Under the pieces are notes generated by a model that was not told where the DNA came from, searched no databases, and saw nothing but the letters and a program-made list of their open reading frames with translations. Shown here one piece after another: positions 1,909 to 25,696 of a stretch of DNA of 25,983 bases (position 1 is the first letter of the stretch; each line of letters begins with the position of its first letter). This DNA is from Bugula neritina (lineage: Eukaryota > Animalia > Bryozoa): assembly GCA_964035545.1 (NCBI GenBank), contig CAXIUT010000098.1:1-25983 (forward strand). Reading direction: 5' to 3'. Both the position numbers and the translations under genes were made by a program.

Positions 1909-4762
1909 ATGAATAAAAATAAAAACAACGCAGATGACCCTCCTCCCACATCTTATCGTTTCTTCTTAGGATCACGTGAGAGATATATTCATATTTCTAG
2001 TGACTTTTAAGGAGGAAATATCCAACTAGTACGACAACTAACTGAGTTCAATGTACCTATCCCCTCACTAAGTATCGACTCAACTGCATTGATGATGGAA
2101 CAAAAACCAAACATAGAGTCAATTCCAAAAGTTGGTTTTATTTCAGAGTTCATGGCTTCCCTAAAAATACGAGAGGAAAGTTTACAGTCACCAGGTTGCA
2201 AACTCTCATGGCAGTTTTTGTATTAAATATTGTATGCAGAATACTTCTCCAAAAAGCTACAGGCCTGTCTTTAGATAAAGAGGCAACAATAGTCTTTAGT
2301 GGTCTGAATGGGGAAGGATAAGCACCTAAAGTCCACTGGTGTTGCGAGAAACGGGAGAGCTAGAGTGCACATTCGAGTATTTATTCAAAAACGAGGAGCA
2401 ACAAGTCGAATTTGCCTTCGCTTTTCCTTATAGTTACGCTCGTAATATTGAATATTTGAACGCTTTGAATGAATATTACTGCAACGATTAGTTCTATTTC
2501 CACAAGGAGATATTGATACATAGTCCTGAGGAAAGAAATATCCACCTATTAACTTTTACATCCTATGATCAGCCAGATAAGTAGCATGAGGAGTAAGAGA
2601 TATTTAACAATGAGCTGTTTCCTTAAAAGTGTAGACCTAAGCGATTCAAGAAGCCAGTGATATTGATATCTGCAAGGGTACATCCTGGAGAGACGGCAGC
2701 TTCTTTTGCTATGGAAGGAGTAATTGATTTTCTGGTTAATAATTCGGATTTACGTTCTTATTTGTTGAAGAAGATGTTTGTGTTTATGGTTGTGCCAATG
2801 ATCAATGTGGATGGAGTATTTCATGGTCATTTTAGAATGGATGGATTTGGAAAAAATCTAAATCGATACTACGTTGACCCTTCTGCCTAAAAGCAGCCTG
2901 CAGTATACGGTATACGTTAGTTGGCAGATCATTTGATCAAGGAAGGTCGATTGTCTCATTATTTTGACTTGCATGCGCATAATGCTAAAAAAGGTGCTTT
3001 TATTTATGGAAATGCTATCAACGATTTTGTGTAGCAGGTGGAAAGTCAGGTGTTTTGTAAGTTATTTGCTCTTAATCACAGTGGGTTTTAGTATTAGTAT
3101 TGTAACTTTTCTCAGAAACAGATGAACTCGAAAGATAGAAACTAAGAGAGGACTAAAGAAGGATGTGGAAGAGTAGTCATGCATAAAAAAGCTCATATCA
3201 TTCATTCTTATAGTCTATAATGTGGCATAATCGCTCCTGTTAAATACAAAACTCCACCTACTCCTATGAACAAAGATTTCTAGTTGGCTCATCATAAACT
3301 TATAGAATCAGCGCCTGTCACTACAAATACTCAAGACCCAGTTTATTTTACTCAGTAATCTTATAAATAGTTGGGAAAGTCAATGTTGATATCGATATTA
3401 GACGCATTTGATAAGAATCCTTTCAATCGGGTGTACAACTCAGCTCATAAGTCGATGGAGCTGTTAAGAAGGTTGACAGCTTTTGAAGTATTTCATACAG
3501 CTGAGAGGTTTAGAATGTTTTAGAAGTATATTTATGGTAAAGTTAAAAACATCAATGAGCTGATTAGATAAGTTCTCAACTCTAAACTTCACTACAGATA
3601 ACTTTATAACTTCTACTTTTATAATGATAAAGAACTCAAAAATACTCAATGGCCTTAAAATATACCAGGATTGGTCAAACCGAAGTATACTCAAAAACTT
3701 AGACGATTCAGATCTTTACAGGAACCTAAATTGGAATATTCTTTATCTTTTCTTGAAGATGTCAGAACTAATAGAGACCAGCTAGAGCACTAGTTAACCG
3801 AAAGTAATGTTAGAATCAACAAAATAGAAGAACAAATGATTTAACAGGAAAATAATCAATCAAGCGAGACTGAAAATGAAGAAGATCCTCTTGAAGAAGG
3901 CAACTATTATGAATAACTGTTGGCTGAAGGAAAATAGATACATAGTCAGGTTTTTATTCCTTTGTAGAAACAAAATCGAGAAGAGCTTTAACCTGATTTT
4001 GAGATATCAAGCTGGAGTACTTACAATTAAAAACCTAAAGAATCTTGGCTTAATTAAGAAAAAGCTCTTTCTATCAGTTAGAAAGATTCGAATGAAGAGA
4101 TAGCACTGAACCTATGTGAGCCTGAGGAAATATAGCAACCTAGAAAGATGAAAATATTTTAGAGACCAAGTTAATCATAGTATCAAGAGTTGAAAATAGC
4201 TCCACTTGAGAGTCCTTCGATGCGTGTTCGTCGTTTATTGAAGAATTAGCAACAGCAGCCTAAAAAGAAAATAACTTCTCATAACTAGATCAAGGGTAGA
4301 ATTAGTGAGATGATAAGCAATATACCTCAAGTTTGTCAGAATTCATTTGTGGCAAATAATACTTTGACTAATTATAGTGGCCTATCTGTTAAAAACGAGA
4401 GGTAGAGAGAAGGACAGTATCCTGAACGTGAGATGCGTTTGTTTTAAGAGATAAAGTTGGAGATCAGATAGTAGTTGAGGAGACATAAGGAGAAGACGGG
4501 AGTGGTGACAGCTAATGTGAAGAAGAGCAAAGGAGTCAAGTATAATAGTTTATCTGAGGTGAAGGAAAAGGAGAGAATTAAATCTACTAATGTTAATTTT
4601 TTGAATTTAAATCTGAATGTGACTCAACAAAAGAATAAATCTCAATCTTTGCAGCGGTCGCCTAGCAAATCTTCTGTAATAAAGACTCAACTGCCTGCTT
4701 TGAACTCACATATACTAATTATTAGCAATAGTAATAGTTCTAAGGGATTGGGACATAATTGA
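1909..4762 (+). CDS. AGBL5: Cytosolic carboxypeptidase 5-like tubulin deglutamylase (M14), 937 aa; join(1909..2052,2073..2219,2240..4762)
   Basis: Motifs SDFEGGN, SWFYF, FAFAFPYSY, ARVHPGE, NLNR, DLHAH, CNFSQKQM..KEGCGRV and HSYSLECG (catalytic Glu = TAA at 3218-3220). Two 20-nt GT-AG introns restore the frame. Long charged C-terminal tail. Confidence 0.93.
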
Positions 4763-4803
4763 AGAAGTGATTGGTAATTATATTAATGACTCTATCTTTT
4801 TTA

Positions 4804-4813
4804 GTTGATGGAA
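4804..4813 (+). promoter_or_regulatory. Candidate upstream motif RTTGATGRA (copy before eIF2 beta)
   Basis: GTTGATGGAA about 65 nt before the ATG; similar words precede several other starts. Function is inferred only. Confidence 0.35.
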
Positions 4814-4878
4814 TTTATGAGTAGGCAATATATTAATTCTTGAGTATTTCTTTTATATTAATAATCATTAATTAAATC

Positions 4879-5566
4879 ATGAAGGAAGAGTTCGAGGATA
4901 TGAAGATCATTACCGACTTCAAAAAACCAAAAAAAGCCAAAAAAGCAGAACAAGGTATGACTTCAATCATGTAGTATAGTCGACTGCGAAAGTTGAAGAT
5001 AGTGTTAAGACTAAACCAGTTGATAATTAGAAAAGATACGTGCAATTGCTAAAGAGAGTGACAGAATTACTCAATAAAAACAATCCCTAACTAGGTACTC
5101 TATAAGTTAGTTAGCTTAAAAATCAAAAATCGTGTTGAAGCCTCCTCAATCAACTAGAGTTGGATCTAAAAAAACAGCTATTCTTAACTTCGCTGACTTA
5201 TGTAAGCAACTCGATCGGCATCCTTAGCATGTGATGAACTTTTTTATAAACTAGTTGGGTCGAGAGGGTTCCATGGGTAACGTGGGCTTTAGTACTTATT
5301 TCTTTATTTCAGCTATTAAAATAGTCATTCAACCTAAACAAATTTAAAATTTATTCAGAAAATATATCACAGAATTCGTTCAATGTCAAATCTGTAAAAG
5401 ACAAAATACCTAATTGGTCAAAGATGACAAAATGAGATTGTGGACTTTACAGTGCAGAGATTGTAAATGTAAGCGAACTGTGCCTACTATGAAGGGAGCT
5501 GAGAAGAAATATGAAGATTATGAGGAAGAGTTGGCTGAAAGAGAGGAAAAAGAGGGCAGTAGTTGA
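4879..5566 (+). CDS. EIF2S2: Translation initiation factor eIF2 beta, 208 aa; join(4879..4954,4975..5094,5115..5291,5313..5566)
   Basis: [64 protein letters not shown] (C4 zinc finger). Two 20-nt introns are required for frame; a 21-nt in-frame intron is inferred from alignment length. Confidence 0.93.
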
Positions 5567-5569
5567 TGA

Positions 5570-5579
5570 GTTGATGGAT
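5570..5579 (+). promoter_or_regulatory. Candidate upstream motif RTTGATGRA (copy before RPL31)
   Basis: GTTGATGGAT in the 55-nt spacer, with a second GTTGATGA overlapping the eIF2 beta stop. Confidence 0.35.
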
Positions 5580-5621
5580 ATCATAAATATTAATATTTAA
5601 TTTAATAATTAATTAGTGGTA

Positions 5622-5981
5622 ATGCCTAAGAAGGAGCAAAGAACTGGACTCACTGAAACAGCTGTTGATACGACTGTCAACATCCACAAGTTGGCTCATA
5701 GAGCTACTTTCAAGAGAAAGGCACCTACTGCTATCAAGAAAATAAAGCAACTTGTCCACAAGATGATGAAGACAGAAGACGTGAGAGTAGATCCCAAGCT
5801 GAATCAGTTTGTTTGGGCTCAGGGAGTTAGAAACTTACCTCACAAAGTCAGAGTTAGAATTTCAAGAAAGAGAAACGAAGAAGAAGGATCTTCCAAAGGA
5901 GAATTCTATTCTCTTGTTCAACATGTTCACATTGAAGATTTTGCTGGAAGACTCACTGAAAAGGCTAAGCTCTCTGCATGA
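5622..5981 (+). CDS. RPL31: 60S ribosomal protein L31 (eL31), 119 aa
   Basis: TVNIHKLAHRATFKRKAPTAIKKIK..MKTEDVRVDPKLNQFVWAQGVRNLPHKVRVRISRKRNEEE. True ATG is 5622, not the GTG at 5616. Confidence 0.97.
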   Translation: MPKKEQRTGLTETAVDTTVNIHKLAHRATFKRKAPTAIKKIKQLVHKMMKTEDVRVDPKLNQFVWAQGVRNLPHKVRVRISRKRNEEEGSSKGEFYSLVQHVHIEDFAGRLTEKAKLSA

Positions 5982-6336
5982 TTGTTAGTCTATTATTTAA
6001 ACCCTAATCCCTTCATGTATTTGACTTTTAAATTCATAAAATATATCTAGTGCATAAATATTCAAAAATAGTCTTTAATAAATTTTTAAATCAATAAAAT
6101 ATTTGTCTAATATTTTAAGATGTCATCAATTGAATCAATTATCATCGATTTCTTATCATATTTTTAAAATTTTAAATATTTTCTTTTCGTTAACAAATGA
6201 TAAAAATATTTTTTACTAAAAAATACCTCAAAATAAATCAAAAAATGCCTTAAAAAAGGTATTATCAAACGATAAAATGACTAATAGTTGATAATTTACT
6301 TTATAATATTGAAGATATTTATGGAAGGAGAGGCTA

Positions 6337-6896
6337 TCATTTGTACTTTTTTTATACTTTTTTAGCTAATACAGTATTAAACTGTTCCCAAGTTATTGAC
6401 TGTTTTCCCTTGCCTGCAATAGTCTGGATAGATTCTTCTACTTGATCATCATTCAAGTTAAGTTTCAACATGATTGATAGTTTTTTGAGGGTATTGAAGG
6501 TAACTCTTTCTTATCCTTCACGATCAAGCATCGAAAAAGCTTGTCTTCTTCCTTCTTAGCTTTGTGCATGACCCTAAATATAAAATAAAGAACTATGGAA
6601 TTAGTCAGCATTGTTAGAAAATCTTAAAATCCAACCCATTCTCCATCCAATTGATCGGCAATATCTTACAATGATTTATAAATGAACTAATGTGATTTAT
6701 CGTAGCCTAGAGTTTTGGCTGTAACGACAATTTATCTAACATCTGCTTGTCTTCTGTTGTCTGCGTAGAGGTTGAAAAGAGTCCAGAAGTCTTAAATTTG
6801 TTTTATTTAGAAGCTTGGGTTTTGTGATACTATGGGTTTGGCCCAGATCTTTTTGTGTTATTCATCTATTATGGCTTTTTTGTCTATTTTGCTCAT
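6337..6896 (-). CDS. Divergent centrin/spasmin-like EF-hand protein, 179 aa; complement(join(6337..6573,6594..6896))
   Basis: QIEDFWTLFNLY..VREIVVTAKTLGYDKSHEFIYKSLEDI..VGFEDFLTMLT..RQAFSMLDREGEERVTFNTLKKLS..LNDDQVEESI..ITWEQF follows the centrin four-EF-hand layout. One 20-nt intron at 6574-6593. Confidence 0.8.
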
Positions 6897-6956
6897 AGAT
6901 ATATCAAATATAATATAATTTAAACAGTTTATTTTATTTATTCTTCATCAATCTTC

Positions 6957-7025
6957 GGGGTTGGGGTTGGGGTTGGGGTTGGGGTTGGGGTTGGGGTTGG
7001 GGTTGGGGTTGGGGTTGGGGTTGGG
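6957..7025 (+). repeat. Internal telomeric tract (GGGGTT)n, right-end orientation, 69 bp
   Basis: Perfect repeat beginning GGGG and ending TTGGG, followed directly by coding sequence. Confidence 0.99.
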
Positions 7026-7648
7026 ACTGAAGTTCTCCTCTTCTTTACTCATCATCAGCTTCCTGTCTTTACTCTTTCTGTAGTCCTTTTCTCTCGATAA
7101 AATCGATTAGGGATAGAAGTAATTACCATAACGTGATACTTCTAAGCTCTCATGGATCCAGTTTCTATTTTGTTGGATAACGTGTCGATAAAACTTATGT
7201 AGAGTGAATCTGGTTGTTTTCCACCATGCATAAGCTGCAAATCCTAACCATCCTCCTACTCCTGCCACACCTAGCCATCCAAAGTTTTGATAGAATTGAG
7301 TTTAGTTGATTTTTCTAATTCCATATCTGCCCACTGGAATGAGTCTTCTGCATACTTTTTGAGTAGTAAATAGGAACATTGAACTCATGACCCATACTGC
7401 AAAAGCTCTGGGGAAGGTAAAGGCTTTCATATCTCTTTGTAGGAAGTCTTCGAAGTTTCTGGAGAGGGTGAGTCTGAATGTTTATGATATTACCTGACAC
7501 CTCTATCGAGGACGTACGTTCTGTGGTCGATCATTTTTTGATCTCTAATGTTTTCCATTCCTATTTTCATGAACTTTTTGAAAGCAGGATTATCGCCATG
7601 ATTCCAGTATCTCTGTGGGTCGAAGTACAACTCTGGAACTTTAGACAT
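7026..7648 (-). CDS. 3'-truncated membrane protein with two hydrophobic segments, possibly mitochondrial; complement(join(<7026..7473,7494..7648))
   Basis: MSKVPELYFDPQRYWNHGDNPAFKKFMK..FPRAFAVWVMSSMFLFTTQ..FGWLGVAGVGGWLGFAAYAWWKTTRF..KEEENFS, then the frame enters the telomere with no TGA. 20-nt intron at 7474-7493. Mitochondrial role is a guess from composition. Confidence 0.8.
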
Positions 7649-7809
7649 ATCACACTATTATCAATTAAATATAAATCATCTATCAACTACAACTCAATAA
7701 CTAAAATAAAAATAATAGCAATCATAAATATAAATAAATTTATGTTTTTAGTTATTTTAATTATCAATATGGTTATTTATAAATATTTAATAATCTAAAT
7801 TTGACTAAA

Positions 7810-7890
7810 GGGGTTGGGGTTGGGGTTGGGGTTGGGGTTGGGGTTGGGGTTGGGGTTGGGGTTGGGGTTGGGGTTGGGGTTGGGGTTGGG
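7810..7890 (+). repeat. Internal telomeric tract (GGGGTT)n, right-end orientation, 81 bp
   Basis: Perfect repeat beginning GGGG and ending TTGGG. Confidence 0.99.
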
Positions 7891-7892
7891 AT

Positions 7893-8168
7893 ATTTGTAT
7901 TATCAACTCTTAGAATGCACTTTACCAACCATAAGTGAAATATTGTTTGTCAAATTTTGATTTAATTGCTAGTAGATAATATATAAAAGTAGTAGAAAAA
8001 GAAAGAGTAGTATAGGAAAGATAGGATTTGTTCCTAAAAAGATAAAAATCATCAACAAATGGATGTGAGTAATAATACAAAATGCCAAAAAAAGAGTAAA
8101 AAATCAAATTAAATAAAAAAACAACACCCATTTTTAAGATAACTAAAAGAAATGATTGGATATGTTGA
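7893..8168 (+). CDS. 5'-truncated C-terminal fragment of an unknown protein
   Basis: Frame is open from the telomere junction to TGA at 8166-8168: ICIINSENALYQPEVKYCLSNFDLIASREYIKVVEKERVVEEREDLFLKREK...KITKRNDWIC. Glu/Lys-rich, purine-rich, with no initiating ATG. Confidence 0.55.
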
Positions 8169-8387
8169 ATATCAAAGGATGAACTGATTACTACTATACA
8201 CTGATAAAACAAAAATGGAATACTAAAGTTATATTTTATTATTTTGTCTGATATGAATTGAGTTGATGAAGGTTGGCGGTGTAGTTGAATCGATTTAGTT
8301 AAGGTTTCAAAATAATTTGAATTGTAAAAAGTTGCATGATTTTATTATCCCATATTAGTTTTAAATATCAAAATCATTCAAACCTGA

Positions 8388-11300
8388 ATGTTCGCTTTTC
8401 TTCAAAAGAAAATAGCTGTTCCTGCTAATTCAGTCGCTTCAGCTTGTTCTTGGGATACCTATGAAGGGTGGCTAGCTATTGGAGCAAGTGAAGGCTTCCT
8501 TAAACTCATCAAACTCGATAGTCTCAAAACTCAAGGAAACGCCTCTCAAGGAAACTAAAGTGCTGACCTACCCAACCATACAGGAAATATCACTCTTATT
8601 ACTTGGAATGATAAATACAGAAAATTGACTACTTGCGATGCAACTGGAACTATCATTGTTTTCATGAAGTACAATGGGCAGTGGGTAGAAGAGATGGTCA
8701 ATAACAGAAAGACTTCTGTCGTTAAAGATATGAAATGGAGTCCTGATGGATCTAAAGTCTGTATTGCCTATGAAGACGGTAACGTGATAGTGGGAGGAGT
8801 GGAAGGCAACAGGAAGTGGGGAAAAGAATATCAGCACAAAGTTCATATCATTGCTTGGGCTCCTAGTTCAAAGGAATTACTTATTGGTACTAATCTGGGT
8901 GAGGTGTATATGTATGATGAAAATGGATAAATTTTGCATCAACTTAGACTCCAAGGTCTTCAACGTATTGTGTAGCCTTAAAACTTTTTGACTCCTAACA
9001 TACCTCTAGCTGGTATTGAGTGGTACGATGAGGCTCAGATGTATTCTGAGGATGCTCCAGTTGGTCTGTGCATAGCATATCAACAGGGCAGATTGATCTT
9101 GATGAAAAATGATAAAGATGAAGATCCGATTGCAGTGGATACTTCTATGCTTTTGAACAGAGTAAAATGGAATCCTGGAGGGACAATGATCGCTGTTGGA
9201 GGCTGTTCTCTTGAGTATGAATAGAAAAGAGCAGTGGTGAAGTTTTTTGATAGCAAAGGCAATCATCTTAAGAACTTGAGGATTCCTAATGCTGAAACAG
9301 TGAATGACTTAACTTGGTAGGGATCTGGACTGAGAATCGCCATAGCTGCTGGTTCAAGTGTTTACTGTGCAGCTGTAAGACCAAACTATAAATGGTGCTA
9401 TTTATCTAATGGTACTTTAGTGTTTGCTTATCAAAAGACAGATCGGGTGGAGTTTTGTTTAGTATTTTGGGATACTAAATCTGATTAGAAGTATATGAAG
9501 TACGTGAAGGAGTTGACCTAGATAAAAGGAGAAGGCTAGTTTTGTGCGATATTTTCTCATCCTTAAGAAGAAATTACTCAGATTGATCTTTGCAATTCGA
9601 TTGGAACTACAATTTAGACCAAACAAGTTAGTCTTTAGGTATCAGTTTATGCTATGTCAAAGACTCATATTGTTGCATGCTCTTAAAACTTCTGCTACTT
9701 ATGGCAATACAAGAGTCAGACATCAAGACTGACTATGTTTTAGCCTTCAACTCAGGTAGGCTATCGTAAGATGGGTCGATAGATATGTTGGTTCGTTGAC
9801 GATAAACCTGATATCAACCAGATTTATGACATAGACCAATTTGATAATACTAAGGAATCTGAAGATATTATCTGTGCTGTGGCTGTAACTGAGCAGTTAT
9901 TGATTGTGGGAAGAGAAAGTGGAGTTTTGAGGAGATTTACTTTACCTCATATAACTGAGTAACCTAAATTGTTTTGGAAACCTTTGCCTTTATTAATATC
10001 TATTAATAGCGACGGGGCAAGACTTGGATTAATAGATATTACTGGAGTGTTGAATATATTGTAAGTTAATTCTCAAGGTGGAAGTGTACTTTAATTTGAG
10101 AAGAAAGAATGTTGGGCTCTTAAATGGAGTTAAGATCATCCTCAGCAACTATGTTTCATGGAGAAAAGTAAACTTACTACTGTAACTAATGTAACTGTCG
10201 GTCCTCAGATCTCTACTGAAGGTTATATTTGTAGTTTCGATAACTTAAAGGTTACTTACTGCTATCTTGATGATATCATGGTATCTCCTGATGAGAATTT
10301 AAAGGCTGAAGAGCTATTTAACTAACATGATTCAGCTTTACTAAGTGAGTTTAGTGATTTGTTAAAGAAAGAAGGAATTATGAAGGCTATTAAGTTTGTT
10401 TAGGATAATTCTCATCCTTCTCTTTGGAAAATTATAGCAGAAAAGGCTCTTCTTGATTTAGACTATTTGAATGCTGAGCGGGCTTTATTGAAAATAGATG
10501 ACTTCAAAACTCTTAAATATGTCAAAAAATTACAAACTTTGGATGACAGAGAAAAACAAAGAGCATAGATCTACACTCTTTACTCGAAATATGAGGAAGC
10601 TTAAAAGATATATAGAAATATCTAAAGAAAAGATCTGGCTGTTAATATGAGAATCAAGATCGGAGACTTCTATGGAGTTCTTGAGATGGTAAAGGAAGGT
10701 TCCGGTTATGATTAAATTTTAAGCAAAATAACAAATCAACTTGGAAATTTCTATGCATAAAGGCTAGAGTGGGATAAAGCTGCCTAATTCTTTTTGACTG
10801 CTAAAAACTTTAAAGGATTGATTGAAGCATTTACTATGCTAGAAGATTACGACAGTTTGGCTCAAATTATTTAAGAAATACCTGAGAACGATCCTTTATT
10901 GAACGAGTTAGCTGATAGGTTCCAGTTGGCAGGTATGGCTGAATATGCAGTTAAATGCTATGAGAAGTTAGGAGAGTACAAGAAGGCTATTGACTGCTGT
11001 GTATTGTTGAATCATTGGAACATAGCGACTGAGTTGGCTGAAAAACATGGATATGGACAGATAGAAGGTCTGCTACAAAACAGTGCTAATGAGTTGTTGA
11101 TGAAGAACAAGAGACTTGAGGCAGCTGAACTGTATCGAAAGGCTAATCGCAATACTGAAGCTGCTAAGATTTTATCTGGAATAGCTAATCAACTAATCTA
11201 GAAAGAAGGAAAGCCATTATATATCAAGAAGCTTTATGTTTTGGCTGCACTTGAAGTCGATCAGTACAAGAAAAGAATAATTGATTCTACAATGACAGGC

Positions 11301-11976
11301 AATAACGCTAATACTACTCGAGTACATAATGTTTAATATAGACTCTTGATTCATTGATTACAAGTGAGATCAATACTAGTTCTGATAAGATACTTAATAA
11401 TCCTTGGAGAGGAGCTGAAGCTTGGCATTTTTACATTCTTTGTCAACGACAACTCTATATGGGACAGTTCAAATCTGCACTTAAAACTGCTCTTAGACTA
11501 ACTGACTATGAGCTGGATATGGACGCCAAAAAGATATATACTTTAGTTGCTTTGGCTGCCTACTATAATAAGGTAAATAATGCTCTATTTAGAGTTATAA
11601 AGAGTGCTCAAGAGCATTTGTCAAACTCTAAGGTATGGGAACTGCTGAAGAGCGTGAAAGATATACTGATATTGCTGTGAGTATATTTACTAAGCATCCT
11701 CCCAAGGAGACACCGGGCGAGAGGATGAAATGTCCTGGAAGAACATGCAAATAGTCGATAAGTGAGTATGATACTTTATGTCGAGGATGTGGTAGTAACT
11801 ATCCTGCTTGTGTGGTGAGCGGGAAGTCGATAGTGAGTCGTAGTTACTATCGTTGCAAGGCTTGTCGTCATAAGATGTATGATAGTTAGGTGTAGAAGCA
11901 TGAGTTGAAACATTGTGCTTTGTGTCATACTCAAATAGATTTTAGGAAATTTGGACAGAGAAATGACTAAGATTGA
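8388..11976 (+). CDS. WDR35: WDR35/IFT121, IFT-A subunit, 1182 aa; join(8388..11321,11342..11572,11593..11976)
   Basis: MFAFLQKKIAVP start, WVEEMVNNRKTSVVKDMKWSPDG, VGGVEGNRKWGKE, LTWEGSGLRIA, RPNYKW, PWRGAEAWHFYILCQRQLY, C-terminal Cys-rich zinc ribbons. Two 20-nt introns. Confidence 0.97.
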
Positions 11977-14656: not shown

Positions 14657-17229
14657 TCATTTGATTTGTTTGTTGTGTTTGATGACTTGATAGAATTTCG
14701 ACAGTTAGTTTTATTGATTTTTATTGAACTACTTCAGGATTAGTTGTTGCGTGTTGGTGCAGTTGTTCATTTGTTAGTAGAACTATTAAAGAGCTGTCTC
14801 CATCCAGTGATTGTCGTCTGGAGTGGGTGTAAGATTAGACTATTTTAGTTGTCGTTGAATATCACCCCAAATCTAGCCCATCTTGAAGTGAGGATACATC
14901 TGAATCACCTATAACTTCTGTTGTTCATATGCAGTCAAATCATTTCTTGCAAAGCCTACCCGGTAAAGAATTGAAAATACGATCAATCTGATGTCATACT
15001 GCTCTACTTCCTATCTGATTCTGTTAACTAAATAGGTTTAGGTTCCTGTTTCGGTTAGATCTTTCAGATATGCTGGTTCTGGTAGGTTCTTTTTTGTTAG
15101 TTAAGGAACCAGAGGTTTACTTCTGTTTGTTACTATTCCTTGCTAGTACTTTACTCCATACTTTTAGTCTTATTCTCCATAGAGTTTTATCATTAGTTGA
15201 GTGGCATTTAACATTGTTTTCTAGCTGTTCCATTCTAAAAATTATTTAACTGCTTTAGCGTTTTCAGTTAGGAATGAAACACAAGAAAGAGCCATTTTTC
15301 TATGCACATAATCGCAGGCTTAGATAAATTCAAGGAGATCAAAGAGTCCTTGGGCGCTTAGAAATCTTTCTTATGACCTTCTGCTTCCCAAAACTGCATT
15401 CCAGAGAGCATTAAGAAGAGCAAGACCTAGTAGAACATAGCGATTAGATGAGGCAATATTCGGATCTTTGAGATATGTGATAAGTATATCAACACCATGT
15501 TTTTACCTGAAGAGTTTCTTATTTTTTTTGCATCCATTGCAAAGGTTGGCAATGATGGTGAGACAGAGCTACTTGATTTCAATTGGATTTTACTATCCCT
15601 GCAAAAACTAAAGCAAATAGTCGATAACTCCTTCTTAGCTGATTTTTATTTTATACTATTATTCGAAAAGAGAAGCATTTGCAAAGGCTTTTAGACATTT
15701 TTATCTTCTCTACATATCAGTTGCATTGGATAGGAACTTTGTTAAGCAGAAGATGCCTTTCTTCTATTAGAAGTCGTCTTTCATGTGAAGGACGATATTT
15801 GATAGGACTGAGAGAGTGTGCCCTTGGAGTTCTCTTAGTTGTGGGACTGACCATCTGGTAACAGCATAAGAGGTATTGGCTGAATCAATATACAGTAAAA
15901 GGTATTTGATGAAGTGAGTATTTTTAGCCAGAAGAATAGTGTTACTGTCTCTTGACTAGATTGCATTGAGAAGACCTGACCATAAAAGCTTTTTAAGTTA
16001 TAGATCTTATGCATTAGTACCAAATTGTACTTTACGGTCTGCTTGCCGATTTTTTGATTCATAAAAAGAGGCCTCATCGATTGTGGAGTAATGGAAAAGG
16101 ATTTATAGGAAGGATGACTCGGGTTTTTGGTTTTATATTTATAGTCGAACTAAGAAGAGAGGAATGCACTCAGGAATGGAGAGAAGATAGTTGACTAGTA
16201 TAACTATTTAGTTTCTGAGACATTTATCTTCAAGTTTGTATCCTTCTTTGACTACTCTAACGAGCAACTTTTGCAGTCCAGTGACATATTACTGACTATT
16301 TAGTGCAATAAGACATTATACGCCTACTTCTTCAATGGCTGACCAAAATATTTAGAAACCAGTTCTGATGAGTCCTGACCTGAAATCATCAGTCATCAAC
16401 ATTATTTCCATTACTAAATGTAGAACTCCTCTTTTGCAAAGTTAATGAGCCAATTTCGAGTACATCATCATGTAACTGATGAGCTAGAGGAGCAGATAGA
16501 TAATTTTTGTTTGATTACGATAGTCATATAGAAGCTAGACTATTGTTTATAAGGCCTTAGATTCACTAAGAGCTCGTAGTTGTTTTGTTCCTTGCATCAT
16601 AAGGATAGTTAGAGGCGAGTTTCCATCATTACTGCTTGCTTCTGTGGCCTATTATCGACTTATTATTTATGGAATTTGCCGTTATGCAAATCTTCTTAGG
16701 TAGTCTACAGTTGTTTCTCTTAAACTCTCAAGGGCAGCAGTTGGACTGGTCCATTGTTGATATCTGAGAAGAGGTCTAAATGATGTTAGAAATACTCGAG
16801 AGATGTAAGGAATCCTGGAACGAATTGCATGTATCTGAGTTAATCAGAGCCAGCATTTTTATTGAACATGGAGGAGAAGTCAATGCAGTCGACAGTGAGC
16901 ATGGCTTGTAGGGCAGAAATCATTTATTATACGCCTTGTTCTAGATCACTTTTAGCCAATTGAAAGAGAGTAGTGAGTCCTTCTACTTCTTCATAGAAGA
17001 ATCCATGGGGTCTTTCTTAGCAGAAGTGGATGATGGCTTTAGCTTTTCTGTCGTGTAGGGATTGTGTGTATTATGATTGGAACATATCTATGACTGAGTT
17101 GATGATGGGAGTAAAGGGTAGTCTTAGTTGTCCATTGACTTTTTATCCATAGTTGAAGAACTTGTCGATTGAGTCGATTCCTGTTCTTTGCATTTCTTAT
17201 TCTGGAGAGAATTGAGTTTTAGTTTGCAT
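14657..17229 (-). CDS. CFAP69: CFAP69-like armadillo-fold ciliary protein, 850 aa; complement(join(14657..16775,16796..17229))
   Basis: SLHDRKAKAIIHFCEERPHGFFYEEV..AGSDELRY..EIFWSAIE..KEGYKLEDKCLRNEIVIL resembles CFAP69. One 20-nt intron gives a length divisible by 3. The middle was not read codon by codon. Confidence 0.8.
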
Positions 17230-17455: not shown

Positions 17456-18597
17456 TCAGAGATTGATTTTATGTAGTATATCTATAAATGATTTTTTATT
17501 TTACGGGCTGCTGTTAAAAGTCTTATACATTGAACTATTTATTGACTCTTATCTTTTAGTTGTATACCCTGAATATTATTCATAAACTATTAATGAAAAA
17601 CGCTATTGACTATACTTACAAGATTTATTCTTAACTGATTTCATTGTCTACATATACTCTAGTAACAATTTTACTCCTTACTTTTGACTCATTCCTGTTG
17701 AACTGAACAGCAAATCTTCACCCTCTACTCTTTTCAGCTTACTCACGCAAATATGGCTGGTTAGAATCAGTGCCTCGACAAAACGAGATAGAGTGAAGTG
17801 CTATCCCATTTTAGAGTATGAAGTTTTCAGGTAGAGAGAAGGAGTGAGAAGCGCGAGATGGTTATGTTGATTTTAGTCTAGAACTTAATTATAGATAAAG
17901 AAGAGTTGAGATGCGCTTATGAGTTTCGGAAAGATATCGAAATCTTTAGCAATATCTAGAAAACATTAAAAAGATCTATTTTGGTAATCTTTGTCTTTAT
18001 CTTTGAGAGTGATTTCGAATTAGAAGTATACCTATATAATGAGATGGCTACTTTATAGAGTTTAGTGAGTGAATCTTTTAATTTTACTAGAAACTCTTTG
18101 GTATCTTAGTTGATTTATTATGATTTGATGCCTTTTTTGAAGAGCTATTCTTCTAAAATAATGTGATACATTTTCTAAAAAAGAATTAATAAATTTTTAG
18201 TAGCCTATTCGTCTTCTAACTCTAGTCCTCTTTTCGATGGACTACCATTCACAAAGATACATCTGGCCAGTCCAGGCAGTAACTAAAGAAATTGTGTGAA
18301 ATACAAAGGTTTAGATCTGCCTACAATATCTATGAAGGTACCTTTGGTGTAGTAAAGAGTGCAAATGGACATCCATTTTTGTGAGCGTTTGTTGAGTGAG
18401 ATGCCGGCTAGTTCTAGTATTTATTATACCATTTATGTGTAGTATTTTTAATGCAGTTCTTGGTAGTTATATTTGGACCCTTTTCCTGAGTAGTAAGTGA
18501 AGATGAGTTCTAGCTGTTTGATAGTGGTTTGTTTGTTGTGCTAGAGGGAGTGGTAGGAGCTGGTCTTGTAGGGAGATTACCTTTACTTTTAGAACAT
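17456..18597 (-). CDS. Hypothetical protein, 373 aa, EF-hand-like helical repeats; complement(join(17456..18031,18052..18597))
   Basis: LELIFTYYS..LYFTQFLELLPGLA..LTKLYKVYFEFE..FLDIAKDFDIFPKLISASQLFFIY..GEHFTLSRFVEALI. One 20-nt intron (18032-18051) yields a continuous ATG-to-TGA frame. Confidence 0.8.
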
Positions 18598-18861: not shown

Positions 18862-18942
18862 CTCATAATCATAACTACTGTTGGTGTTTATGGAGTGGAT
18901 ATCTGTTGTTTGTGGTGATATAATATAATATGATAGATAATA

Positions 18943-19886
18943 ATGGATGAAGGGTTGCTGTCGTGCGACTAATCTTTTGGTGCTGCTGTGTGCATAATGT
19001 GATTATAGTATAAGTTAGTAAGCTGATTGAGTGCACGATAGGAGTCCTTATGTTAATATTGGTGGTGTATGGGATAGTAAGAAGAATATTTAGGGTGTTA
19101 AGATTATCCTTTTATCTATTTTTATCTTTATTTATGGTTCTAACTCTTGTATGTACCACTCAGCTATTATAGTTTCTATTACGTTTGCGATTGATTCTTC
19201 TAAGTTGCTTTTTGCTTTTCTAGCTGTCTACTCTTACGACATTTACTTTTCCATAATAGTTTTAAAGATGGGTTTGAAGCTGATATCTGTCATTAGGTAT
19301 AGAATCAACTATCATCGGTATTATAAAGTTATCGTTGGGGGGTATGTTCTATATCAATTGCTGCTTTTGGGCGCCTTGATTTTCTATGCCATACTAACGG
19401 GCATTTAAGAGTGCAATTGTAATAAGCAGATAACATAGTGAGTCCTGCCTTGGTGGTTAATTCATTGAGTTTGTTGTCGGCCTTGTTATTTGTGATGTTG
19501 GGTGTGATTCACAACAGATAGCAGGAGAACAGGTTGGATTTATCACTGTCCTAAGGGATGTTAAATAATCCTTTGCCTAGATTTAGATGTTGGCTGGTCT
19601 GCAATGTCATTGGCCAAGTGATGGTGTTAGTTGAAACGATAGTACTGAAAGTAATGGGTTGTAGATTTAGTAACGTAATGATGACTATATTTAGGATGAC
19701 GGGGTGAATGCTTTGTGTTATTTGGTGTTTGCTTTTATTAGCTACCACTTGGGAATCGGATCGACTATTTATTTTTACTATGAGAAGAGAGCGGATTCAG
19801 TTCGGAGAGAAGCTGATGTTCCAAGATAGATTTAGATGGTTTATGTGGACCATTTTTAAAATAAAAAATAAAAATAGTCTATCTGA
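18943..19886 (+). CDS. Orphan seven-transmembrane protein, 287 aa; join(18943..18998,19019..19152,19173..19418,19439..19674,19695..19886)
   Basis: Four 20-nt GT-AG introns join seven hydrophobic segments into one ATG-to-TGA frame. The last intron has an equally valid alternative at 19651-19670. Confidence 0.82.
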
Positions 19887-19917
19887 TTGATTAGTTTATA
19901 GTTATATTATAACGTTC

Positions 19918-21194
19918 ATGACTAATAGTCAACTTAAGATATGCCAATTAGCCAGTAAATTGCTGATTGCTCTATCAAAAGGAGAAGAAGATATTGAAAA
20001 GGTTAAGTAAAGGATGGTATCTCATCCTTTTTTTAGTCCTTTCCCTCTGTTTAGCCATGTTGTAACACATGGAGATATTATTAAAAAGTAACATTTGATA
20101 GCTTTCCTTAAAAATAGAAAAGAAAGAGTCGATGATAGGTAAGTTGTTAGTTTGTTGGAGATGGAGACAGGCAGGAGTATTTGGAGTTATAAAAATTATT
20201 TAGAGTTTATCTACCCATCTAATTGTTAAAAAATTTAATAAATAAAGAAAAATAATATCAAAAGATATCCTAAATTGCTACATTGTGGAGCAACTTAGTC
20301 AACCTTATAAGCTTTTTCACTATTATTGTCTAAAAAAATATTATTATAAAGAAAAATTGATCAACAAAAATCAAATCTTAGAATATATAGTTCAAGAAAA
20401 AAAATCAAAGAGCTTATTCAAGTAATCAAAAAAGAATAAAAGTAGATATTATAGGTTAATGAGGATCAAATGATAACGATTGAGGAGTTGAAAAGATTTA
20501 TTGATATGTATTCAGGTGGGTAAAGTTATAATTTGGAGTGTTTGTGTCGGGCACTAGGAATGGAGAAAGGCTTTATTGAAATAAGTATGTTTTAGTTGTT
20601 TTTGAAACCATCTAAAATCGTAAAGAAAGGGTTTAATAGACAGCTAAAGAGAAAATCTCTTGTAATAACTGAAGATTTTAGTTAAAATGTTTTAAAAGAG
20701 AATATAATAGACTAAATAATCGATTAGATGAGTAAAGAAGATACTAAAAAGAATGTTAAATCAGGAAAATAGAATAAAAAGAAGTCAATGACAGTGAGAA
20801 ACAATAAGATAGATAAATTTGAATCAAAAAGAGCAAAAACTCCTTTGATAAGTAACTTTAATTCTAAGTAATAGTAAAAATAGAGAAATAAAAAGCAATT
20901 ATCTTGTATAGATGAAGAAATGAAAGAAATATTGCTGAAAATGCTGTAAGTAAATTCTTAAAGATAATAGAAAATGTCTCTTACAGTGGATAAGTAAAAC
21001 TTGAGAATATATTTAAAGATATAAACAAATCAGAAAATGGTTTTATCGATTATCATTAGTTGAAAAATTATTTAAATTATATAGGACTGAAACTATCGAT
21101 GCCCTAGATAACATATATCTTGAAAAGATTAGATAGAAGTGGAAAGGGAGTGGTTCTTGAGTCAGATTTTATGAGGTTTTTCTTGGAGAATTGA
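19918..21194 (+). CDS. Ciliate-type EF-hand protein, about 425 aa, with a one-base frame break near 20996-20999
   Basis: Open frame from MTNSQLKICQLASKLLIALSKGEEDIEKVKERM. The C-terminal EF-hand pair NIFKDINKSENGFIDYHELK / KRLDRSGKGVVLESDF lies in the -1 frame and ends at TGA 21192-21194. Confidence 0.75.
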
Positions 21195-21263
21195 TTTTGA
21201 TCAATTATTGATTAGTTTATTGTGTAGTTAGTTTATGGTTTATATAACTGAGTTTGATTTAAA

Positions 21264-22495
21264 ATGAAGAAAGAAAAGAGTAAAGATGAGAAGAGTAAAA
21301 AGAGTAAGGATAGCAAGAGCAAGGCTAAGAAAGAGGGTGATAAGAAGAGTGAGAAGTCGGGGTCAAAGTCTAAATCAAAGGGGAAGGAGGTATCGAAAGG
21401 AAAAGAATCAAAGACTCCAAAGAAATAGGCTAAATCAAAGAAAGGAGATAAGCAATCAGAGATGTCATCTATTTCTCATTTGCCAGTAGCTCCAGCGTAT
21501 GGTATTTATGATATTAGTGATTGCGTGCATCATAAGAGTCCATTTATAAACTTTTGCTAGACCTGTGAGGAACTAGTATGCAACCAATGTACTGTTTTTG
21601 GACCTCATAATAATCATGTAAGTAGTGAATGATTAAGTTGCACAGGATATTGAAAATGACTGATGCTTATCGTTTGAGGAAGTTCTACTTAGTAGAAGCA
21701 ATTCGGTCCAATTTGGTAGATAAGAGAGATAAGATCATAGCTCAGCTGCATAGGTTGGAATATCGGGTTGAAGAGATTAGGTTTGTTAAAAATATTATTG
21801 AGAGGGATATCAGGTCGGAGTATTCAGGCATTTTGGAGAGACTTAAAAATCATGAGGGAGTTAAATTGGCAACTCTTACTCACTAGGTGTCTCTTGTTCA
21901 AAGATAGTTAGATACTATTAATGATTTAGGCAATAAGTTTTTTGAATTAACTAATATGGAATGTTAAAAGATAGAGCAAGAGAGAAGAACGAACAGGTTT
22001 TTACTTCAGTCTAAGGAGATGTACGATGCCATTGAGTACATAACTAGTCGACCTGATAAAGTATAGTTTTAGCGATTTAGGTAGCTCCTGATTTGACTTT
22101 GCATGACATGCCTCGCTAGGTGTAGGCTAATCGGGACCAAGTGAAGAAGGCTTTAGCTGGTCGTTAGATAAATGCGTTTAAGAACTAGATACTATGGAAG
22201 TTGGTGACCGATTTGATGGCTGAGAAGAATTCTGTTCGTCGTTAGGTGTAGGAGAAGGCGAGTGGTGTGATAAAGGAGATGAGTCAAGAGGTGGAAGGGT
22301 TGAACGGGAAGTTGAAGAAATACAAGTTGATTTGTTTTTTTTTGCGGGGTGAGGATGAACAACTAGAGCGTGAATGTCGGATGTGAGATGAATAAGAATA
22401 AAGAAGGAGGAGAGAAACGGTTTTAGACTTAAAAATATCCTAGCTAGAAACATATGGGAAATGAAAGGCACTTTTTTACCAAGGTGGTTGACTGA
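21264..22495 (+). CDS. B-box zinc finger / coiled-coil protein with Lys/Ser-rich N-terminus; introns 21618-21637 and 22061-22080; one-base frame break in T9 at 22335-22343
   Basis: B-box CVHHKSPFINFCETCEELVCNQCTVFGPHNNHLHRI, then coiled coil. C-terminal CFFCG..VNVGC..GNERHFF is in the +1 frame; read literally the frame stops at 22384-22386. Confidence 0.82.
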
Positions 22496-22536
22496 TAATA
22501 TCGGAATCATATCATGAAGTATCAATATTTGTTTTA

Positions 22537-23482
22537 TCATTAGCCAGTTTTGTACTTTTTCCCAAAAATGAGGAGTTGAAGTTGATCGTAGATAGTGAGA
22601 ACTCCTGCTCCAGTAACACCTCTCAAAATATTGGCTCCTATTCCTCCCACAAAGGATTTAAAGCCTTTTTATTTGTACATGTGTTTGATTGCTTGAAAGG
22701 AACTGTTAAGTTTTAATTATTAACCTGAAGACATCATCATTCTACGACGAATAGTATCCATCGGGTAGGCAACTATTCCTGCAGTTACTGTTACTGCATA
22801 GCTGAGGAGGAAGGAGATGAAGATGTTATTGATGTATTGAGAGGGGGACTGATTATTTGACTCCTGCATTCAGTCCGAAGTAGACTCCTCGATAGATCAT
22901 CATCAAGGGAATAGTGATTCCAAAGCCTCTGTATAAGCCTCTGATGCCATCAGAATGATGTGTTTTTCTAAAACAGTCGATGATTCCTTAATATTGTCTC
23001 TTTCTTCCTGCTTTAGCCATATAGATGTCATTGGTCAGTCTAGTTCTTGTATAGTCAAGAGGATATACGAAACATTGAGTGGATGCTCCTGCTAGGCTGC
23101 CTCCTTTCATGTTGTTGATAACAGTTTTAGTAAAACTTTTTTATTAATTATTCTTGTTCAATGAAAATCTTTTCATAAAGAAATCTTTGAAGGCAAAATT
23201 GAGAGCTTGGGTTGGAAAGTATCTGATGACGTTAACAAGATTACCTTTATAGTAGGCTTTCCATCCTTATTCGAGATATAGTCTTTTGAAGCAGTCGATG
23301 ATTCCTTTATATGGTTAGTTAATGAGTTGTTTTTGGATGAGAGGAGCTTGTAGTTGCAGTCTGATTTTGATGACTTCTATGGGTGAGGCAAGGGTTTTAG
23401 AGAGAGCTGCGGCTGTTCCACTGATAAAGAATTCAATAATGAACTGATTGATTTGCGATTATTGTGTTTGAATTGAGGTCAT
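22537..23482 (-). CDS. AAC: Mitochondrial ADP/ATP carrier, about 314 aa, with a one-base frame break at G5 22843-22847
   Basis: [48 protein letters not shown] and the signature [12 protein letters not shown]. The span is 946 nt (3n+1) and no intron fits. Confidence 0.95.
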
Positions 23483-24192
23483 AAAGAATATAATAATAGC
23501 TAGAATCTATAATATTTATATTAGCATAAATATGTTTTCTCAAATGAAAGATAAATATAATTTTAATAAGTCTATTGGAGTTAAGTTCATTGATTGTATT
23601 GATAGATTATTTTAACTTTTATGTTGTTTTATTATTAAAAATCAATATTGTCTAAAGGTGTTAGAAATGACTGATTTGGTTATGTATTTTGAGATTAATC
23701 TATGATCATTTTACCTTTATTTTTTGAAGATTATTTGATATTTTATCTGTTAGTTATGATTATTTATTGTTGTATTTAGATAGCGTCTCTTATTATATTC
23801 GTTATTATCTTTGTTATTTTGTGTTTTATTTTATATTTAAACTCCTATTCTCTAATAAGTGATCATTATTCTTTTATTTTTTGTTGATTTTTATTACTAT
23901 TTCTAACCAAACAACTCCTTTTATATCCTTCTTTCATTTCTTTATTATTCATGTGATAATCTTGTACAAATCATTCATTAATAGAAGATAAAAGATTGCC
24001 TTATTGTACTACCAAGTAATCAATATTACTAGCTCTCATGCCAATCTCTTGAATTTAACTTGCTGTATCTTTTAACTCAGATATTTATTTCTAGTTATTC
24101 AAAATTAGTTCTATTCTATGTTGTTTTGTTATTTTTTATAATCAGTGATATAATAATTAGTTTAGTATGATATGATTTATCTGAGGATGATA

Positions 24193-25696
24193 TCATAGTC
24201 TTGATTTCACTGATGGATATCCAAGCAATTTACAAATTCCATCTCCGTATTAGGGATCTGCCTTGTAGAAGTTCTTTATGGCTCTCTATGCTATTTCTCG
24301 AGAAACTGGCTTCATTGCCCCTGCCACTGTTTTGATAGTATGTTCACGCATAGTGTTATCCATTACTCGACGGAAAAGAGTTCCAGCCTGACTAAAGTCG
24401 CAGTTAGGATGATTAGGCTTGTGACGAGCAACCAATCCTGTCACCTTGTATGGCTCATATCGAGCTTGACTGTTAAAAGTAAATGTATTCTTGCCTCCGT
24501 TCATCGAGTTAGGCTCGTAATTAGGTGAACTTCCTTTATTACAATAAATATACCTCCGTTTTTATCAACTCTCATCGGTCCATCTCTAATAGCATTGTGG
24601 ACTTTAGATCTGTAGGGACAGTTGATGGGAATTTGTTCATAGTTTGTTCCTAATCTGTGTCTGTGAGTATCTGGGTAAGAAAAAAGACGGCCTTGCAACA
24701 TCTTATCGATGGATGGCTCCATTCCTGGAACTAAATGACCTGGAGAGAAGGCAGATTGTTCCGTCTCAGCAAAGTAGTTATCAACATATCTGTTAAGGAC
24801 CAATTTTCCAACTGGAATGAGAGGGTAGTCAGCTTGAGGAATGACTTTAGTAACATCGAAAATGTTCCATCTGTAGTTAAGTCCTTCAGCTTCAGGAATT
24901 ACTTGGATTTTTAAGTCCCATTCTGCTGTTTTTCCTGCATCTAGAGTGTTCATTAGGTCTCTTGTGGCATAGTCCGGATCGTTGAGACGATCAAATGCTT
25001 GTTCATTAGTGAAATTTTTTATTCCTGAACAAGTTTTGAAGTGTAATTTGACCCAAAAGGCTTATCCATTTTTGTTGATCCATCTAAAGGTGTGAGAACT
25101 GTATCCATTCATATGTCTGTAGCCATCTGGAGTTCCTCTATCACTCATAAAGATGGTGACTTGATGGGTTGATTCTGGACTGAGTCCCCAGAAATCCCAG
25201 ATAGCTGTTGGACTTCTGATGTTGGATCTTGGTTCTTTCTTTTGGGAGTGAATAAAGTCAGGGAATTTGATAGGATCTCTGATAAAGAAGATAGGAGTAT
25301 TGTTTCCAACCATATCCCAGTTACCTTCTTCAGTATAGAACTTGATCGCAAAACCTTGGTTAATAGATGGCTACCTCTTGGGTCTCTTTAGGTATCGGAA
25401 GATCCTTTTTATCCTGCGACTGTGGAGAATCTTGTGAAGATGGGAGTTTTTTTACCAATGGTATCGAAGACTTTGGCCTTAGTGTATTTAGAGACATCAT
25501 GGGTGACTTCAAAGTATCCGTGTGCTCCTGCTCCTTTAGCGTGGACGACTCTTTCTGGGATTCTTTATCTATCGAAGTGGGCTAGTTTATCTATAAGATG
25601 GAAATCTGAGATGACAATGGGTCCGTTTTGTCCTGCAGTGACTGAATTTTGGTTGTCGTCTACTGGCAATCCTGTGGAGGTGGTGAGGTTGGTCAT
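24193..25696 (-). CDS. CAT: Monofunctional heme catalase, 487 aa, C-terminal PTS1 (SRL); complement(join(24193..24533,24554..25354,25375..25696))
   Basis: [17 protein letters not shown] (first E = TAA), [49 protein letters not shown]; ends VKSRL. Two 20-nt introns. Confidence 0.98.

Follow-up and report, generated by a model that had tools for sequence, protein, structure and literature searches.

The 25,983-nt contig analysed here (the window) carries 19 short segments that are very probably ordinary U2-type GT-AG spliceosomal introns of a peritrich-type oligohymenophorean ciliate, shrunk to a near-minimal and almost invariant size. Eighteen of them are exactly 20 nt long, and one (5292-5312) has 21 nt. 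The sequence-only reading from which we started had proposed spliceosomal-type GT-AG introns in a ciliate. Frame restoration, conserved positions with diverged interiors, precise absence from one relative (L029) and the cDNA of another relative all bear out this proposal.

A ciliate chromosome with TGA as the only stop

The window is an entire contig with a telomere at both ends and belongs to a cobiont within a 216-Mb host assembly. It is a small but complete macronuclear chromosome of a peritrich-type oligohymenophorean.

1..86, no strand: left telomere, repeat of (CCCCAA)n
25791..25983 (start approximate), no strand: right telomere, repeat of (GGGGTT)n

The longest open reading frame extends over 2967 nt when TGA is taken as the only stop, compared with 558 nt under the standard code. 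In alignments of the catalase, eIF2-beta and carrier genes, TAA and TAG stand opposite GAA and GAG in the orthologs, and a tRNA with the anticodon CTA was found. These observations confirm the earlier assignment to a ciliate reading TAR as Glu: TAA and TAG are sense codons (Glu) and TGA ends the genes, as in the nuclear code of Peritrichia (UAR=Glu, PMC10553269).

Excision of the segments closes ten gene models

All 19 segments were found at the positions and on the strands claimed for them, each starting with GT and ending with AG. As for U2-type introns, their excision restores the reading frame and colinearity with homologs, and the ten gene models listed below are closed (length divisible by three, no internal TGA, one terminal TGA) only once the segments have been taken out. 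The claim that no other intron length is required holds within these ten resolved models, a closure that stop-free 3n introns, or long ones outside resolved genes, may escape. In the following list, A15 denotes an A at intron position 15.

2053..2072, + strand: 20-nt intron, phase 0, cytosolic-carboxypeptidase-like gene 1909-4762 (937 aa); A15; flanking exon weakly matches Pepdidase_M14_N
2220..2239, + strand: 20-nt intron, phase 0, same carboxypeptidase-like gene; A15
4955..4974, + strand: 20-nt intron, phase 1, eIF2-beta-like gene 4786-5566 (239 aa); diverged 20-nt GT-AG intron at the same site in the L027 ortholog
5095..5114, + strand: 20-nt intron, phase 1, eIF2-beta-like gene; diverged 20-nt intron in L027; L029 lacks exactly those 20 columns, as in the spliced form
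5292..5312, + strand: 21-nt stop-free intron, phase 1, eIF2-beta-like gene; A15; a 20-nt frame-breaking segment in L027; L029 lacks exactly those 21 columns
6574..6593, - strand: 20-nt intron with GTT donor, phase 0, EF-hand gene 6896-6337 (179 aa), presumably centrin-like; A15
7474..7493, - strand: 20-nt intron, phase 2, gene 7648-6948 (226 aa, no family match); A15
11322..11341, + strand: 20-nt intron, phase 0, WDR35/IFT121 gene 8388-11976 (1182 aa); excision puts upstream TPR_WDR35 and downstream TPR_IFT121 in one frame
11573..11592, + strand: 20-nt intron, phase 0, WDR35/IFT121 gene; sole GT..AG pair in the zone
16776..16795, - strand: 20-nt intron, phase 2, gene 17229-14657 (850 aa); recovered exactly by a length-blind gene decoder (kmax 40)
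18032..18051, - strand: 20-nt intron, phase 0, gene 18597-17456 (373 aa); A15
18999..19018, + strand: 20-nt intron with GTG donor, phase 2, membrane-protein gene 18943-19886 (287 aa); diverged 20-nt GT-AG intron at the same site in the L047 ortholog
19153..19172, + strand: 20-nt intron, phase 1, same membrane-protein gene; the sole one without A15 (A14); the corresponding 20-nt segment of the L047 ortholog has A15
19419..19438, + strand: 20-nt intron, phase 1, same membrane-protein gene; A15
19675..19694, + strand: 20-nt intron, phase 0, same membrane-protein gene; A15
21618..21637, + strand: 20-nt intron, phase 0, gene 21264-22386 (360 aa); A15; retention leads to TGA 4 codons on
22061..22080, + strand: 20-nt intron, phase 0, gene 21264-22386; A15
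24534..24553, - strand: 20-nt intron, phase 1, catalase gene 25696-24193 (487 aa); orthologous introns of 20 (L024), 20 (L025) and 23 nt (L026); L043 cDNA colinear with the spliced form
25355..25374, - strand: 20-nt intron, phase 1, catalase gene; orthologous introns of 22 (L025) and 21 nt (L026); L043 cDNA colinear with the spliced form

The 18 segments that change the frame are all 3n+2 in length, and each 20-nt intron, when retained, leads to a TGA ahead of the normal stop (11 codons on for 11322-11341). Intron phases 0/1/2 are distributed as 9/7/3, at a density of about 1 intron per kb of CDS. Protein family profiles were also compared across several junctions. Over the stop-free 5292-5312 segment, the PF01873 spacing is -1 residue when spliced versus +6 when retained. 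The TPR_IFT121 profile matches with positions 1-59 upstream and 79-99 downstream of 11573-11592, with an offset change of 2 residues, and the PF00199 offset is the same (-4) on either side of 25355-25374. At the second catalase junction, the variability of the region limited agreement with PDB coordinates to within 2 residues.

In the ADP/ATP-carrier-like gene at 23527-22540 (-), the frame has to be corrected by +1, and no plausible intron would do so. The sole candidate for a missed intron in this gene, a 13-nt GTC..CAG segment, was set aside for a 1-nt difference from the L026 ortholog at a C5 run.

A near-invariant adenosine inside the introns

An A occupies position 15 in 17 of the 18 introns of 20 nt (P about 1e-7 given 33% A) and also in the 21-nt intron, and positions 16-18 are T-rich. 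The sequence-only reading held that the interiors share little sequence; this has to be corrected for the near-invariant A15 and the T-rich bases behind it. Each intron can be described by three fixed points, GTA at 1-3, A at 15 and (T/A)AG at 18-20, with AT-rich filler for the remainder. A15 is most likely the branch point, and branching at this candidate would produce a lariat loop of 15 nt with a 5-nt tail.

Relatives and cDNA support removal as introns

On six related metagenomic or transcript contigs we found orthologous loci with the same intron positions and diverged interiors. The length sets, with the intron of the window given first, are 20/22/21, 20/20/20/23, 20/20, 20/20/absent, 21/20/absent, 20/20 and 20/20. 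The two absences are the 20-nt and 21-nt introns of the eIF2-beta gene in L029, which are missing exactly, so that its sequence equals the spliced form. At both catalase introns, the poly(A) cDNA L043 of a relative aligns colinearly with the spliced sequence; a genomic partner of the same species was searched for and not found. Many relatives' genomic ORFs cease aligning exactly at 24534-24553, and a public protein collection holds these genes as fragments broken at the introns.

It could be argued that the segments are never spliced and represent chance GT..AG 20-mers beside frameshift errors or pseudogenes, sites of ribosome skipping, or leftover DNA-elimination elements. The sequencing runs holding the segments are DNA only, and the carrier gene has its unexplained +1 frame break, both of which would fit such a reading. 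Contigs of four of these runs (2000-7900) cross the introns unspliced and contain no 20-nt joints, which is uninformative on splicing. Against it stand 19 independent cases with GT and AG ends, 18 of which have A15 in common, and positions kept in relatives despite diverging interiors and lengths differing by non-multiples of 3, together with the exact absence in L029 and the poly(A) cDNA without the segments. As to elimination elements, the segments sit in telomere-capped macronuclear DNA and are bounded by GT and AG, not by TA. We regard the unspliced reading as extremely improbable and retain spliceosomal introns as the explanation.

Twenty nucleotides is the only length peak

We counted the motif GTA..A(-6)..HAG by spacing in a length-blind manner, using spacings 25-45 as the background. 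The window contains 29 matches at spacing 20 versus 12.0 +/- 3.6 in the background. The corresponding counts are 166 versus 68 +/- 9 (z about 11) over another 165 kb of ciliate contigs from this assembly, and 59 versus 26 +/- 5 in four relatives. Over the 165 kb, counts at spacings 17-19 and 21-30 do not exceed background, and the same 20-nt peak appears in both GC classes of contigs. The motif class without A15 shows no excess. The bound from this spike test is loose: among GTA/A15-type introns of 17-24 nt, a share of at least about 60% has a length of 20 nt (95% confidence).

Two further approaches were less informative. One was a Viterbi decoder, self-trained on codons and dicodons, whose prior was uniform over intron lengths. 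Its coding signal amounted to about 0.28 bit per codon, which does not suffice for short exons; a kmax of 100 led it to favour long spurious skips, and three of the listed introns came out exactly at a kmax of 40. No census was drawn from it. The other, an ORF-joining scan with control dinucleotides, was too noisy because random TGA-free frames are long, and all that it showed was an excess of 3n+2 for GT-AG (146, versus 63 of 3n+1).

These counts bear on the possibility that the true length distribution is broad and Paramecium-like (about 20-34 nt), the window being unrepresentative or the 20-mers having been picked by the reader. Orthologous introns of 21, 22 and 23 nt in relatives and the 21-nt intron in the window lean this way, and a thin scatter over many lengths is compatible with the spike test. 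However, 20 is the only spacing above background in the 165 kb, and the ten models of the window were closed by the listed introns alone. We regard a broad distribution as quite improbable. The narrow 20-nt class is preferred, although "single-length" is too strict a term for it: 20 nt dominates in the window (18 of 19) and in the other contigs and is the peak in the four relatives, but there is one 21-nt intron here and lengths of 20, 21, 22 and 23 nt occur in relatives.

Splicing machinery

The sequence-only reading had also suggested an independently evolved, ruler-like spliceosome. This suggestion was not upheld: a U1 snRNA with a canonical-looking ACUUACCUG 5' end is present on a ciliate-type contig (C244) of the same assembly, and the snRNA searches gave no sign of an altered spliceosome. 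Searches for U2 and U6, in which the top candidates were scored and the ciliate was partly represented, gave matches on large host contigs only. Evolutionary independence is not established either, because some phylogenies (PMC10553269) make Paramecium, which has short introns, the sister of peritrichs.

A remodelled spliceosome specific to the lineage, with U1- or U2-associated factors lost or truncated, might nevertheless measure out 20 nt. Both the peak at one length and the fixed A15 are in keeping with a molecular measuring constraint, and PMC13685798 describes regulatory splicing factors that vary from lineage to lineage within the ciliates. On the other side, besides the canonical-looking U1, relatives accommodate introns of 21-23 nt and the window one of 21 nt, and Stentor, with 15-nt introns, conserves all five snRNAs and the core proteins (PMC9505925); therefore, tiny introns need no reduced machine. 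We consider remodelling unlikely and favour ordinary introns that have become very small.

What may set the length

The length of such introns would be set by the smallest spacing between the 5' splice site and the branch point that the spliceosome tolerates, because in the four introns longer than 20 nt (own and orthologous, 21-23 nt) the A is found at position 15 in three and at 16 in one, never at -6, with the extra bases lying between this A and the 3' AG. Deletion bias and selection for compactness may drive introns down to that floor. Lengths of 3n+2 could be favoured since an unspliced mRNA would shift frame into an early TGA and be removable by nonsense-mediated decay, a logic proposed for Paramecium.

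A stronger version would be that what is measured in this lineage is how far the branch A lies from the 5' splice site (14 nt, to A15), neither the total length nor the distance from branch to 3' end, with extra bases tolerated only after the A. This 5'-anchored ruler is drawn from n=4 introns, and we put it forward tentatively, as an idea that we rather doubt. If true, it would suggest that joint occupancy of the 5' splice site and the branch site has a steric floor of its own here, and that a second "minimal lariat" size has been set independently within the ciliates.

For annotation, gene callers with a default minimum intron size and the standard code will shred all genes of such cobiont ciliates. 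Gene models can be recovered with a simple rule: an intron begins with GTA, has A at 15 and ends in AG at 19-20, TGA alone is a stop, and TAR is Glu.

Comparison with known small introns

The introns of heterotrichs (Stentor coeruleus, Blepharisma; 15-16 nt) resemble the present set in having one dominant length, a 5' GTA and AT-rich filler. In both, the A six bases from the 3' end is near-invariant; it lies at position 10 of 15 or 11 of 16 in Stentor (PMC9505925) and at 15 of 20 here. The U1 5' end is canonical in both. Unlike in heterotrichs, the length is 20 instead of 15 nt, and the A lies 14 instead of 9 nt from the 5' splice site. The lengths are 3n+2 and not 3n, so retention always shifts the frame, and the strong phase-0 excess is absent (9/7/3). 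In longer introns, the A is kept at -6 in Stentor but at position 15 or 16 here (four cases). According to PMC13685798, intron density in heterotrichs is below 0.1, as compared with about 1 per kb of CDS here.

Like Paramecium, the present ciliate is an oligohymenophorean with very short GT-AG introns of non-3n lengths, which place a premature stop in unspliced mRNA. Paramecium introns spread over about 20-34 nt with a mode near 25, whereas here we observed one sharp peak at 20 with no excess at 21-30 nt. Short introns with 3n lengths disfavoured in Paramecium are noted, citing Jaillon 2008, in PMC13685798. The same source (2026) describes narrow intron-length distributions resembling Paramecium's for the peritrichs Vorticella campanula, Epistylis hentscheli and Campanella sinica, and published peritrichs belong to the same genetic code group as the present ciliate (UAR=Glu, PMC10553269). 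An explicit 20-nt mode for peritrichs was sought in the literature and not found. The "pygmy" introns of chlorarachniophyte nucleomorphs measure 18-21 nt, mostly 19; they are likewise GT-AG introns of near-fixed size (about 19-20 nt), although they belong to an unrelated lineage and a reduced endosymbiont nucleus.

Tiny introns within a narrow range of lengths are already known in other ciliates (Stentor, Blepharisma and Paramecium, and as reported in 2026 three peritrichs), and the present case is a further example, not a new kind of splicing. It adds a second sharp size class (20 nt, 3n+2) alongside the 15-nt class of heterotrichs and offers a natural comparison of what sets the minimum intron and of whether lengths that shift the frame have been selected to guard against unspliced mRNA.

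Nineteen tiny introns in ten gene models

All 19 segments between 2053 and 25374 that the sequence-only reading had proposed as introns carry GT and AG at the proposed ends; 18 of them are exactly 20 nt long and the remaining one (5292-5312) has 21 nt. Removal of these segments results in ten closed gene models, each with a length divisible by three and a single terminal TGA. Retention of any 20-nt intron brings a TGA before the normal stop, and the intron phases are divided 9/7/3.

Gene models of the window after removal of the 19 segments
Cytosolic-carboxypeptidase-like protein, 937 aa, Peptidase_M14
eIF2-beta, 239 aa, PF01873 (introns 4955-4974, 5095-5114 and 5292-5312)
EF-hand protein, 179 aa
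WDR35/IFT121, 1182 aa, TPR_WDR35 and TPR_IFT121
25696-24193 (-), catalase, 487 aa, PF00199 (introns 25355-25374 (-), junction 1, and 24534-24553 (-), junction 2)
Five remaining gene models, without a family match

The runs compared with the window were all DNA. A slightly diverged strain in one of them, X3, which is filed under a different host label, differs from the window by about 0.5% over 5.9 kb. Its C>T change at window position 5310 converts the CAG end of the 21-nt intron into TAG, keeping the AG. An ADP/ATP-carrier-like gene with three Mito_carr-type repeats (23527-22540 (-)) has a +1 frame change near 22850-22840, at a run of five C, which no plausible intron repairs. The ortholog in a relative's contig (L026) is one base shorter at the C run and reads through; the break is either a homopolymer assembly error or a real frameshift or pseudogene.

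Orthologs with and without the introns

The offset between the catalase and the PF00199 profile is the same on both sides of 25355-25374 (residues 45-95 correspond to profile positions 41-91, 109-204 to 105-200, and 207-373 to 203-369), and the residue count between the catalase pieces is therefore exactly as predicted. A protein search with one catalase exon found many metagenome fragments of 75-93% identity, in which the alignments end exactly at junction 2 although the ORFs continue; this pattern marks an intron of the relatives at that very site. The junction 1 intron has 20 nt in the window and 22 and 21 nt in two relatives; the junction 2 intron has 20 nt in the window and two relatives and 23 nt in one relative. 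Between the window and the relatives, the introns have conserved flanks and diverged interiors. A relative's 1464-nt Logan contig ending in poly(A) (L043) is colinear with the spliced catalase of the window at both junctions.

In one relative (L027), each of the three eIF2-beta sites holds a 20-nt intron; in another (L029), introns 2 and 3 are missing, with gaps of exactly 20 and 21 columns in the alignment, and its gene matches the spliced form of the window. Because the ortholog of the stop-free 21-nt candidate 5292-5312 is a frame-breaking 20 nt in the one and precisely absent in the other, this segment is an intron as well. For the four-intron membrane-protein gene (18943-19886), a further relative (L047) carries segments of 20 nt, diverged from those of the window, at sites 1 and 2 (18999-19018 and 19153-19172).

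Close relatives of the window genes are widespread in metagenome assemblies, and some of their proteins are filed as 'UNVERIFIED_CONTAM' of the isopod Idotea baltica, suggesting peritrich epibionts as common contaminants of aquatic-animal assemblies. In protein collections, the relatives' genes are fragments, broken at TAR codons and tiny introns.

A macronuclear chromosome of a peritrich-type ciliate

The host assembly comprises 216 Mb in 321 contigs, the largest exceeding 29 Mb, and the window is one entire contig. It starts with (CCCCAA)n and finishes with (GGGGTT)n, which makes it a full macronuclear chromosome of a ciliate, about 26 kb long and a cobiont in the host assembly. The same telomere opens many further small contigs, and the same coding signature was found in 17 fetched stretches (165 kb) of the assembly. 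Long dipeptide runs (PNPNPN, PQPQPQ and PTPTPT) occur in ORFs near gene ends (7694-8377 (-) and 6948-7106 (-)) and on the telomere repeat (25772-25982); those on the telomere repeat are only translated telomere, and the PN run forms the end of a 226-aa protein (gene 7648-6948). Internal (GGGGTT)n arrays in one orientation, every few kb, accompany a terminal telomere in contigs C10, C11, C14 and C15 (L004-L014), among which L012 contains a scaffold gap of 200 N. These resemble several small macronuclear chromosomes fused end to end during assembly or scaffolding, or else alternative sites of telomere addition. Contigs C12, C13 and C17 (L015, L016 and L018) are GC-rich (43-50%) with long standard-code ORFs and probably belong to bacterial cobionts.

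The GC content of the window is 33.7%, and its longest ORF measures 2967 nt with TGA as the sole stop versus 558 nt when the standard code is applied. In the long ORFs, TAA and TAG account for about 5% of codons; they stand opposite GAA/GAG of orthologs in the alignments of catalase, eIF2-beta and the carrier gene. A sister contig (C10) encodes a tRNA with the anticodon CTA (L005:6787-6858; ARAGORN label Pyl), which begins with TCC and has GGTTAGGA in the D-loop region; we take it to resemble a tRNA-Glu derivative, fitting TAG=Glu. The TAR=Glu code of the sequence-only reading is thus borne out by TGA-only ORFs, orthologs and tRNA. Since a UAR=Glu code has been reported for Peritrichia (PMC10553269), the organism is peritrich-type.

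Length distribution beyond the window

Matches to the motif GTA..A(-6)..HAG were counted on both strands at each spacing between 17 and 45, without a length prior. For the relatives, A was anchored at position 15, which at spacing 20 coincides with -6.

Motif matches at spacing 20
Window: 29; background 12.0 +/- 3.6
Other ciliate contigs of the assembly, 165 kb: 166; background 68.2 +/- 9.0
Higher-GC contigs of the 165-kb set: 73; background 29
Lower-GC contigs of the 165-kb set: 93; background 39
Four relatives, 71 kb: 59; background 26 +/- 5

In the 165-kb set, match counts at all other spacings from 17 to 30 were 47-76, no higher than background. Motifs lacking A at position 15 had no excess at spacing 20, and bacterial contigs and host stretches gave no peak in the motif count. 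The excess at spacing 20 is about 0.6 per kb in the window and other contigs alike, and all four relatives peak at 20. Dominance of the 20-nt length, as first read from the window, thus extends to the other contigs and the relatives. The genome-wide estimate comes from these motif counts; ab initio decoding and the joining of ORFs had too little power for a census. By that estimate, almost every tiny intron of the organism is 20 nt long; the formal 95% bound from the same counts is looser, namely that at least about 60% of 17-24-nt introns have this length. Stop-free 3n introns or long introns in unresolved regions could escape the window's count of 18 of 19.

A conserved adenine at position 15

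Of the 18 introns with 20 nt, 17 have an A at position 15 (A15), which is -6 in this class, and the 21-nt intron has A15 too (P ~1e-7 given 33% A); the exception, 19153-19172, carries A14. The 20-nt introns are rich in T at positions 16-18, and 16 of the 18 have A at position 3. The earlier observation that the interiors share little sequence missed the common A15 and T-rich 16-18. The fixed points are GTA, A15 and AG, with one dominant length. A15 would serve as branch point, with a loop of 15 nt. Four introns exceed 20 nt (21 nt in the window; 21, 22 and 23 nt in relatives); three have the A at position 15 and one at 16, and none has it at -6, which suggests that the distance from the 5' splice site to the branch is the rigid element. 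Because the length is 3n+2, retention causes a frameshift along with the early TGA; this fits the translational-surveillance argument made for Paramecium, which is discussed in PMC13685798.

Spliceosome and comparison with known systems

A U1 snRNA gene (C244:2223-2377, minus strand; L041:1501-1655) scored 73 bits, above the Rfam threshold, and has the canonical ACUUACCUG 5' end. Since this canonical U1 lies on a contig with ciliate-type coding statistics, we see no sign that U1 recognition has been abandoned. The U1 gene adjoins a papain-like protease gene with in-frame TAA/TAG. Searches for U2 and U6, in which only the top candidates were scored, matched large contigs alone, and these were taken as host copies. 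The proposed independently evolved ruler-like spliceosome found no support from the machinery, with a canonical U1 present.

The one-size tiny-intron phenomenon is real, clean and clade-wide. Heterotrichs have fixed tiny introns of 15-16 nt, whereas the introns here have 20 nt; in Stentor the A stays at -6 in both the 15-nt and 16-nt classes (PMC9505925), unlike here in introns longer than 20 nt. No statement of '20 nt' for peritrich introns was found in the literature searched, and the accessible text of PMC13685798 (2026) gives no mode; that portion describes the intron-length distributions of three peritrich genomes as narrow as that of Paramecium, for which short introns are known. Because fixed tiny introns in heterotrichs, short introns in Paramecium and narrow distributions in peritrichs are already known, the one-size introns described here are a further case of a known phenomenon rather than a new category.
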